Source: Piromyces finnis finn (lineage: Eukaryota > Fungi > Neocallimastigomycota). Taken from it: a stretch of DNA of 64,000 nt. The notes under the pieces are model-generated. The model was not told the DNA's origin. It saw only the letters and a list, made by a program, of their open reading frames with translations, and searched no databases. Position numbers and translations under genes: made by a program. The DNA lies in assembly GCA_002104945.1 (NCBI GenBank), contig MCFH01000006.1, positions 372,001 through 436,000 of the forward strand. The letters are read 5' to 3'. Positions 56,027-57,025 of the stretch are shown here, piece by piece (the stretch's first letter is position 1; each line of letters begins with the position of its first letter).

Positions 56027-56409
56027 TTAACGTAGTTTCCCATATATAAATAGTAGATAAAAAAAAAGGATAAAGAAAAAGAAAGAAAAAATAAAAAAAA
56101 AAAAAAATCAAAGCCTTTGTTTTATTTTTATTTATATAAACTTTTTTTTTTATTTATTATTCTTTAGAAAAAAAAAAAAAAAAAACCCTAATTATATCAT
56201 ATTATTAAATATTGATTATTAAATAATAATGATAAAATTTAAAAAAAAAAAAAATAATAAATTTAAGCATTTAATAAAAATTATAAAAACTATATTCATA
56301 CATTAAAAAATTTTCTCTTTAAAAAAGATTTTTTTTACTTTTAATTTTTAAATTAAATTTAAATTTAATAATTTTTTTCGGAGACCAACAACAAAAGCAG
56401 GTCACTTTA

Positions 56410-56555
56410 TGAAGAGAATAAAGCATCCCGCTACTCGGCCAGCCTATACCCTTCAAAAATTAAAATATAGTTTATGATAGACAAAAGAATATCTACCATA
56501 ATGTCATTGGCGTCACCCAATGAAGTTATTATCCTTACTCATTAATTTGAGGCAA
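56410..56555 (-). ncRNA. U12 minor spliceosomal snRNA
   Basis: Minus strand TGCCTCAAATTAATGAGTAAGGATAATAAC-TTCATTGG-GTGACG-CCAATGA versus human U12 UGCCUUAAACUUAUGAGUAAGGAAAAUAAC-GAUUCGGG-GUGACG-CCCGAAUC; 10-bp second hairpin (56472-56501); Sm site AATTTTTG (56461-56454); 3' hairpin with GCGGGATGC. 3' end uncertain (56410 to about 56379). Confidence 0.88.
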
Positions 56556-57025
56556 ACAGTTTAATTATTACTGCTGGACTTCACTTTATTTTATATAAAA
56601 CTTTAACTAAATAAACTATTTTAATTGTATTGAATTAAATTTTGTTGATTTTGATTGGTTAATATTATTTTTCATTATTCATATTTTAAAAATTAATTAA
56701 TTATTTATTTTCCCATAAAAAAAAACACTAATAAACTAAATTTTATTATGAATATATTTATTTTTTCAAGAAAAATATTATTTTTTAAATTTTCATTTTT
56801 ATTTCAATTAATTTATCATCATAAATATTAAATATATATAATTTTAAATATGAATTAAAAATTATTCTTTATATATTTTTACTTTAATTTTAAATAAAAG
56901 AAAAATTAAATAGATTAGTTTATTTAAAAATTTACTTTTTTTTTTTTATTTTATTTTTATATTTTTTTTTGAATTTTTTTGAATTTTTTTTATTAATACT
57001 TTATTTTTATTTCTTATTTTAAGAT

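Follow-up and report, generated by a model that had tools for sequence, protein, structure and literature searches.

Does the anaerobic gut fungus Piromyces finnis encode a U12 small nuclear RNA, and does that RNA belong to a minor spliceosome still in use? U12 recognizes the branch site of the rare minor introns, and the Dikarya fungi have lost the minor spliceosome. The question arose from a short island in a 64-kb stretch of P. finnis DNA (hereafter, the window), in which a U12 gene had been proposed on inspection.

Identity and structure of the U12 gene

When the window was compared with all 4227 Rfam families, U12 (RF00007) was the sole match above the gathering score. The covariance-model search, which the original prediction had named as a check, gave 66.6 bits (gathering cut-off 53; E 9.4e-11) for the minus strand at 56380-56555, covered model positions 1-151 of 151 without truncation, and assigned the site to U12 in the Rfam clan competition. 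Scanning the whole 56.5-Mb assembly with RF00007 returned this locus as the only U12 match. Each motif that had been named was found in the proposed order, at or beside the position given for it on the minus strand (Table 1), and the island is indeed richer in G+C (0.35 at 56400-56549) than either flank (0.07-0.12). The proposed end at 56410, which gave an RNA of about 146 nt, cuts through stem-loop III; both the model and the fold reach 56380, and the gene is therefore about 176 nt long.

Table 1. Positions of the U12 gene, its elements and flanking signals in the window, and of partner genes and introns elsewhere in the P. finnis genome
Feature	Position	Strand	Basis or remark
U12 snRNA coding region, about 176 nt	56380..56555	-	RF00007; ends predicted from the model
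U12 5' end UGCCUCAAA	56546..56554	-	Read directly in the sequence
Branch-site recognition sequence GAGUAAGGA	56532..56540	-	Read directly; exact match to the position first proposed
Stem-loop IIa, perfect 7-bp stem, conserved loop GUGACG	56504..56523	-	Model, fold and direct reading
Stem-loop IIb, A+U-rich	56471..56502	-	10 bp in the original prediction, 12 bp in the minimum free energy (MFE) fold
Predicted Sm protein binding site AAUUUUUGA	56453..56461	-	Model and direct reading; between stem-loop II and the 3' stem-loop
Long 3' stem-loop III	56382..56445	-	Model and fold
CCAATCA box, putative upstream promoter element, -103 to -97	56652..56658	-	Common to snRNA genes
TATA box TATATAAAA, -42 to -34	56589..56597	-	Position shared among snRNA genes
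Putative 3' box TTAATTTAAAAATT, 24-37 nt past the U12 3' end	56343..56356	-	Common to snRNA genes
U4atac candidate	C90:253883-254021 (L003:1501-1639)	+	Rfam match and U6atac pairing
U11 candidate	C152 (L002: about 1375-1615)	+	Rfam match and upstream 5' end
AT-AC introns	L010, L011, L017, L024, L027, L028, L034, L036, L039, each from oriented position 1501		

The predicted RNA folds more stably than expected from its composition. The MFE structure has an energy of -50.2 kcal/mol, compared with -36.6 +/- 3.9 kcal/mol for shuffled sequences (z -3.5), and none of 200 shuffles was as stable. Stem-loops IIa and IIb and the inner part of III were also present in the centroid fold. With regard to the surroundings, the island had been placed between convergent TYR1 and GH45 genes. 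The GH45 assignment held (Pfam PF02015, E 3e-32); that gene lies on the minus strand, as U12 does, and U12 lies about 470 nt downstream of it. The TYR1 label of the converging plus-strand neighbor was not confirmed by Pfam searches of single exons, which leaves the U12 finding unaffected.

The elements of the P. finnis RNA follow one another as they do in the U12 RNAs of RF00007, such as human RNU12: UGCC at the 5' end, then the branch-site box AUGAGUAAGGA, the IIa loop GGUGACGCC, stem-loop IIb, the Sm site AAUUUUUG and, last, the long 3' stem-loop. The P. finnis sequence GAGUAAGGA sits within AAUGAGUAAGGA near the 5' end and corresponds to the branch-site box. The differences are small. The P. 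finnis U12 is about 25 nt longer because stem-loop IIb forms a 12-bp A+U-rich stem, which appears as a 20-nt insertion relative to RF00007 and makes this stem-loop about 20 nt longer than the consensus. It has GGAUAAUAAC, with a U, where the RF00007 consensus has GGAAAAUAAC, and its 5' end reads UGCCUC instead of the UGCCUU of most U12s. The cmscan alignment flagged this C as a non-standard pair in stem-loop I, one pair of which is lost because C replaces U. The U11/U12 65K protein binds to stem-loop III of human U12, and by analogy the P. finnis stem-loop III may serve as the 65K binding site.

U2 is the functional counterpart of U12 in the major spliceosome. Like U12, it pairs with the branch site and then with a U6-type RNA, it belongs to the same Rfam clan, and the U2 and U12 genes of this genome have a common promoter and 3' box pattern (see below). 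The two differ in recognition sequence and in the class of intron served, and also in copy number, in that U2 is represented by at least five good copies and U12 by one. The true U2 genes score 149-153 bits. Three identical U2 genes form a tandem array with a 923-bp period (C146:599794-601833, minus strand), other copies are found on C13 and C151, and one divergent copy scores 54 bits.

A second U12 sequence was available for comparison. Metagenome contigs were searched in one exact-pattern scan, using a pattern unable to match human U12, and a single contig of a related gut fungus (L042) was recovered, the U12 of which scores 60.6 bits. It too lies about 470 nt downstream of a same-strand dockerin-GH45 gene, and its flanks are otherwise diverged from those of P. 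finnis. Dockerin-GH45 neighbors are in keeping with an anaerobic gut fungus. The 5' end, the branch-site box, the Sm site and the apical hairpin are unchanged between the two RNAs, as is the stem of stem-loop IIa, the loop of which differs by one base. In stem-loop III, one A-U pair is swapped to U-A and two G-U pairs are changed to A-U, so that pairing is kept, and where P. finnis has stem-loop IIb, L042 has an unrelated hairpin capped by a UUCG loop. Differences of this kind are expected when a structured RNA is under selection; the two sequences give modest support for this, and the covariation support is anecdotal because there is a single outside homologue. The part of the contig directly past the U12 3' end (L042:1-460) has lost the 3' box, has a G+C content of 0.43-0.57 and carries a Pro/Ala-rich open frame; it represents either a different neighbor gene or a chimeric assembly.

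Signals flanking the snRNA genes

We aligned the flanks of two U1 genes, four distinct U2 promoters, U4, three U5 genes and U12, together with the U12 of L042. Nine of these carry CCAATCA at -99 to -103, namely U12 of both species, U4, two of the four U2 promoters, two U5 genes and both U1 genes. Variants were seen at the gene U5_c (-110) and, as CCAATAA, in two U2 copies. The background frequency of CCAATCA in the window is 7.8e-5 per position. A TATA(A/T)A(A/T) motif was present at -37 to -45 in 12 of 15 upstream regions (U12 of both species, U4, U4atac, three of four U2, all three U5 and both U1), and the three that lacked it there belong to U11, U6atac and the divergent U2 copy. On the 3' side, TTAATTTAAAAATT was located 15-35 nt past the U1, U2, U4 and U5 genes, either as such or with one to three changes. 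In the window, this 14-mer occurs once on either strand, at the site past U12.

A longer upstream sequence, the 14-mer TTAMCCAATCAAAA, was considered as a shared signal and rejected. It occurs 12 times genome-wide, compared with 10 occurrences of controls, which is no enrichment, and only 2 of the 12 sites precede RNAs that Rfam recognizes. What the snRNA genes share is the shorter CCAATCA at a fixed distance rather than the 14-mer. A weaker element resembling TCATTCAT is located about 15 nt after the CCAATCA box of the snRNA genes.

We lean towards the view that CCAATCA near -100, TATA near -40 and the 3' box TTAATTTAAAAATT make up a three-part expression signal that is common to U12, U1, U2, U4 and U5. 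From their position and conservation, we infer that the first would act as an upstream promoter element, the second as a TATA box and the third as a box for 3'-end formation. No description of such a signal in Neocallimastigomycota was found in the literature that we searched. If the signal is real, snRNA gene promoters and terminators would be defined for the first time in this phylum, and the signal would be a possible handle with which to drive small RNAs in anaerobic fungi, which are hard to engineer. The shared pattern may also aid the annotation of small RNAs in these organisms.

Partner RNAs, proteins and introns

The original prediction extended from U12 to the genome as a whole, which was expected to hold U11, U4atac, U6atac and U12-type introns. 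U6atac was detected well above its cut-off (52.1 bits; cut-off 33) and carries GCCGA, the "CC variant" of the 5' splice-site box. U4atac and U11 were recovered as candidates just below theirs. Hence, the genome appears to contain all four minor-specific snRNAs, two of them as below-cut-off candidates.

The U4atac candidate scores 49.2 bits (E 5e-6; cut-off 53). Its first 24 nt pair with positions 26-49 of U6atac at -28.7 kcal/mol, an energy that was attained by none of 500 shuffles (-10.8 +/- 2.9 kcal/mol), and the two RNAs form a stem II of 11+5 bp, which we take to differ from its human counterpart by a compensating change, among others. A separate major U4 (89.9 bits) paired with U6atac at only -9.2 kcal/mol. 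In its K-turn stem-loop and its Sm site, the candidate scarcely differs from the major U4. The candidate is thus supported by its pairing with U6atac and by the existence of a separate major U4. A supported U4atac candidate is of practical value; no other snRNA is harder for surveys to detect, and published surveys have had difficulty with U4atac in this group.

The U11 candidate scores 38.2 bits (E 5e-4; cut-off 39). The canonical U11 5' end, AAAAAGGGCUU, was found about 110 nt upstream of the start of the Rfam model match, which suggests that A+U-rich inserts have lengthened this U11. A candidate C/D box snoRNA resembling SNORD14 (L002:2162-2325, minus strand; 52 bits, cut-off 64, E 6e-9) is located at a distance of about 550 nt.

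A search for proteins specific to the minor spliceosome, which had also been suggested as a check, identified genes for two. In the U11-48K gene, a zf-U11-48K CHHC zinc finger scores 26.9 bits, and an exon further downstream matches human U11/U12-48K (8r7n_F, E 2.3e-9). The 25K gene encodes the ubiquitin-like domain PF18036 (36.4 bits) and matches 25K chains in the PDB at E 0.003-0.007. A Pfam search for PDCD7 (59K; PF16021) gave no match in this genome, nor in any control genome.

Simple counts of intron patterns gave no enrichment. The pattern RTATCCTT...TTCCTTAAY with a gap of 20-50 nt occurred 4 times genome-wide compared with 1 control occurrence, from which we concluded no enrichment, and a looser U12-type pattern occurred 31 times compared with 40 for reversed-pattern controls. 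Introns were, instead, picked from the pattern matches by their G+C contrast, the phase compatibility of their exons and Pfam continuity, the exons being searched by profile one by one rather than as joined spliced models. Eight to ten AT-AC candidates were obtained. Their donor is ATATCCTT, their interior (9-18% G+C) is poorer in G+C than the sequence on either side, TCCTTAAC is followed by AC 10-13 nt on, and the longest open frames that flank them are phase-compatible. In one case (L039), ATG9 profile positions 415-451 and 453-478 flank the intron with one split codon between them; in another (L034), the flanking exons match RhoGAP profile positions 47-74 and 79-119. AT-AC introns were also located in a gene for a CLC channel (L036) and in POLR3C (L027). 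U12-type introns are characterized by a ATATCCTT or GTATCCTT donor and by a TCCTTAAC branch site that lies 10-15 nt ahead of the 3' end, and these results bear out the expectation that real genes of this genome contain them. The TCCTTAAC motif is complementary to GAGUAAGGA of the U12 from the same genome.

The search pattern allowed G or A as the first base, and the convincing introns were all AT-AC; about 11 GTATCCTT matches were seen, none of which was intron-like. This small sample hints that the AT-AC subtype predominates in P. finnis. Within the window itself, two of seven RTATCCTY matches were examined, both intergenic ATATCCTT/GTATCCTT sites in A+T-rich spacer that lacks a branch motif, and no convincing U12-type intron was identified.

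We also searched for pairing between U12 and U6atac. A simple pairing search identified a 4-bp UGCC/GGCA duplex between the U12 5' end and the U6atac of the same genome, which corresponds to helix Ib; no clear duplex was evident by this approach for helix Ia. One possibility is that helix I takes a shifted register when the UGCCUC 5' end of U12 pairs with the CC-variant U6atac.

Function of the U12 gene and its place among earlier surveys

By analogy with characterized U12 snRNAs, we expect the following course of events. U12 would be transcribed by RNA polymerase II from its own snRNA-type promoter, with CCAATCA at about -100 and TATA at about -40, and capped, and the downstream 3' box would help to end the transcript. 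An Sm ring would assemble on AAUUUUUGA, and U12 would join U11 in the U11/U12 di-snRNP. The sequence GAGUAAGGA would then pair with the intron branch site UCCUUAAC such that the branch adenosine bulges out. Upon release of U6atac by U4atac, the U12 5' end would pair with U6atac to give the catalytic core.

Two other explanations of the locus have to be weighed against this one, both of which we regard as very unlikely. One is that the U12 locus is a pseudogene or an evolutionary relic that is out of use. There is a precedent, in that isolated U12 and U4atac matches in the rust Phakopsora were suggested to be relics (Davila Lopez et al. 2008; PMC2396436), and two features of the P. finnis RNA could be read in the same way, namely the non-standard stem-loop I pair that results from the C in UGCCUC and the helix Ia that is not evident by simple pairing. 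However, all of the partner snRNAs, the specific proteins and cognate introns in essential-looking genes are present in the same genome. The locus is also the sole U12 match in the assembly, and the related species represented by L042 keeps the functional motifs and compensates the stem changes. Its putative promoter and 3' box show no damage and correspond to those of active-type snRNA genes, which argues strongly against a dead gene. We consider it highly improbable, therefore, that the locus is a relic.

The other explanation, to which we attach still less weight and which seems barely credible, is that 56380-56555 resembles U12 by chance, as part of a G+C-richer island, or is a divergent U2 copy. 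It is true that many weak matches arise in A+T-rich genomes and that U2 and U12 share an Rfam clan. Against this, the match extends over the full model at an E value that is far from weak, U12 prevailed in the clan competition, true U2 genes elsewhere in the genome have the high scores given above, and the branch-site box GAGUAAGGA is of the U12 type, not the U2 type. We are close to certain that 56380-56555, on the minus strand, is a single-copy, functional U12 snRNA gene of P. finnis, the family and elements of which are evident from the model, the fold and direct reading. Its transcription, exact ends, protein binding and activity in P. finnis are what we infer by analogy. The gene is unannotated as far as is visible, and a curated version with coordinates and anatomy has practical value.

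The original prediction had left open whether a minor spliceosome was already documented for the lineage, and it was. Larue and Roy (NAR 2023; PMC10639083) examined more than 3000 genomes using Infernal with RF00007, RF00548, RF00618 and RF00619, and the accessible part of their text names P. finnis, together with Neocallimastix californiae, among the Neocallimastigomycetes with minor introns and minor snRNAs. Judged from that part, the species and the method are the same as here, and the P. finnis genes are named there with neither coordinates nor structures nor flanking signals. The minor spliceosome of P. finnis is, therefore, already known, and the U12 finding is correct and ordinary; nothing changes for specialists because the observation was published in 2023 for the same species. 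The U12 finding confirms that the ancient second spliceosome has been retained in a gut fungus that is an obligate anaerobe. Two small additions to the known picture may be the pattern that flanks the snRNA genes and the support that pairing gives to U4atac. For N. californiae, Olthof et al. 2024 (PMC11347168) reported 129 minor introns along with U11, U12 and U6atac, and found U4atac only at a lowered threshold, whereas in P. finnis the pairing with U6atac lends support to the U4atac candidate. An earlier survey (Davila Lopez et al. 2008; PMC2396436) found that U11, U12, U4atac and U6atac are kept, in single or low copy, in Zygomycota and Chytridiomycota, but it lacked Neocallimastigomycota. 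The CC variant, GCCGA, of the P. finnis U6atac is reported in that survey for other lineages, though not for the fungi that it lists as AAGGA (PMC2396436).
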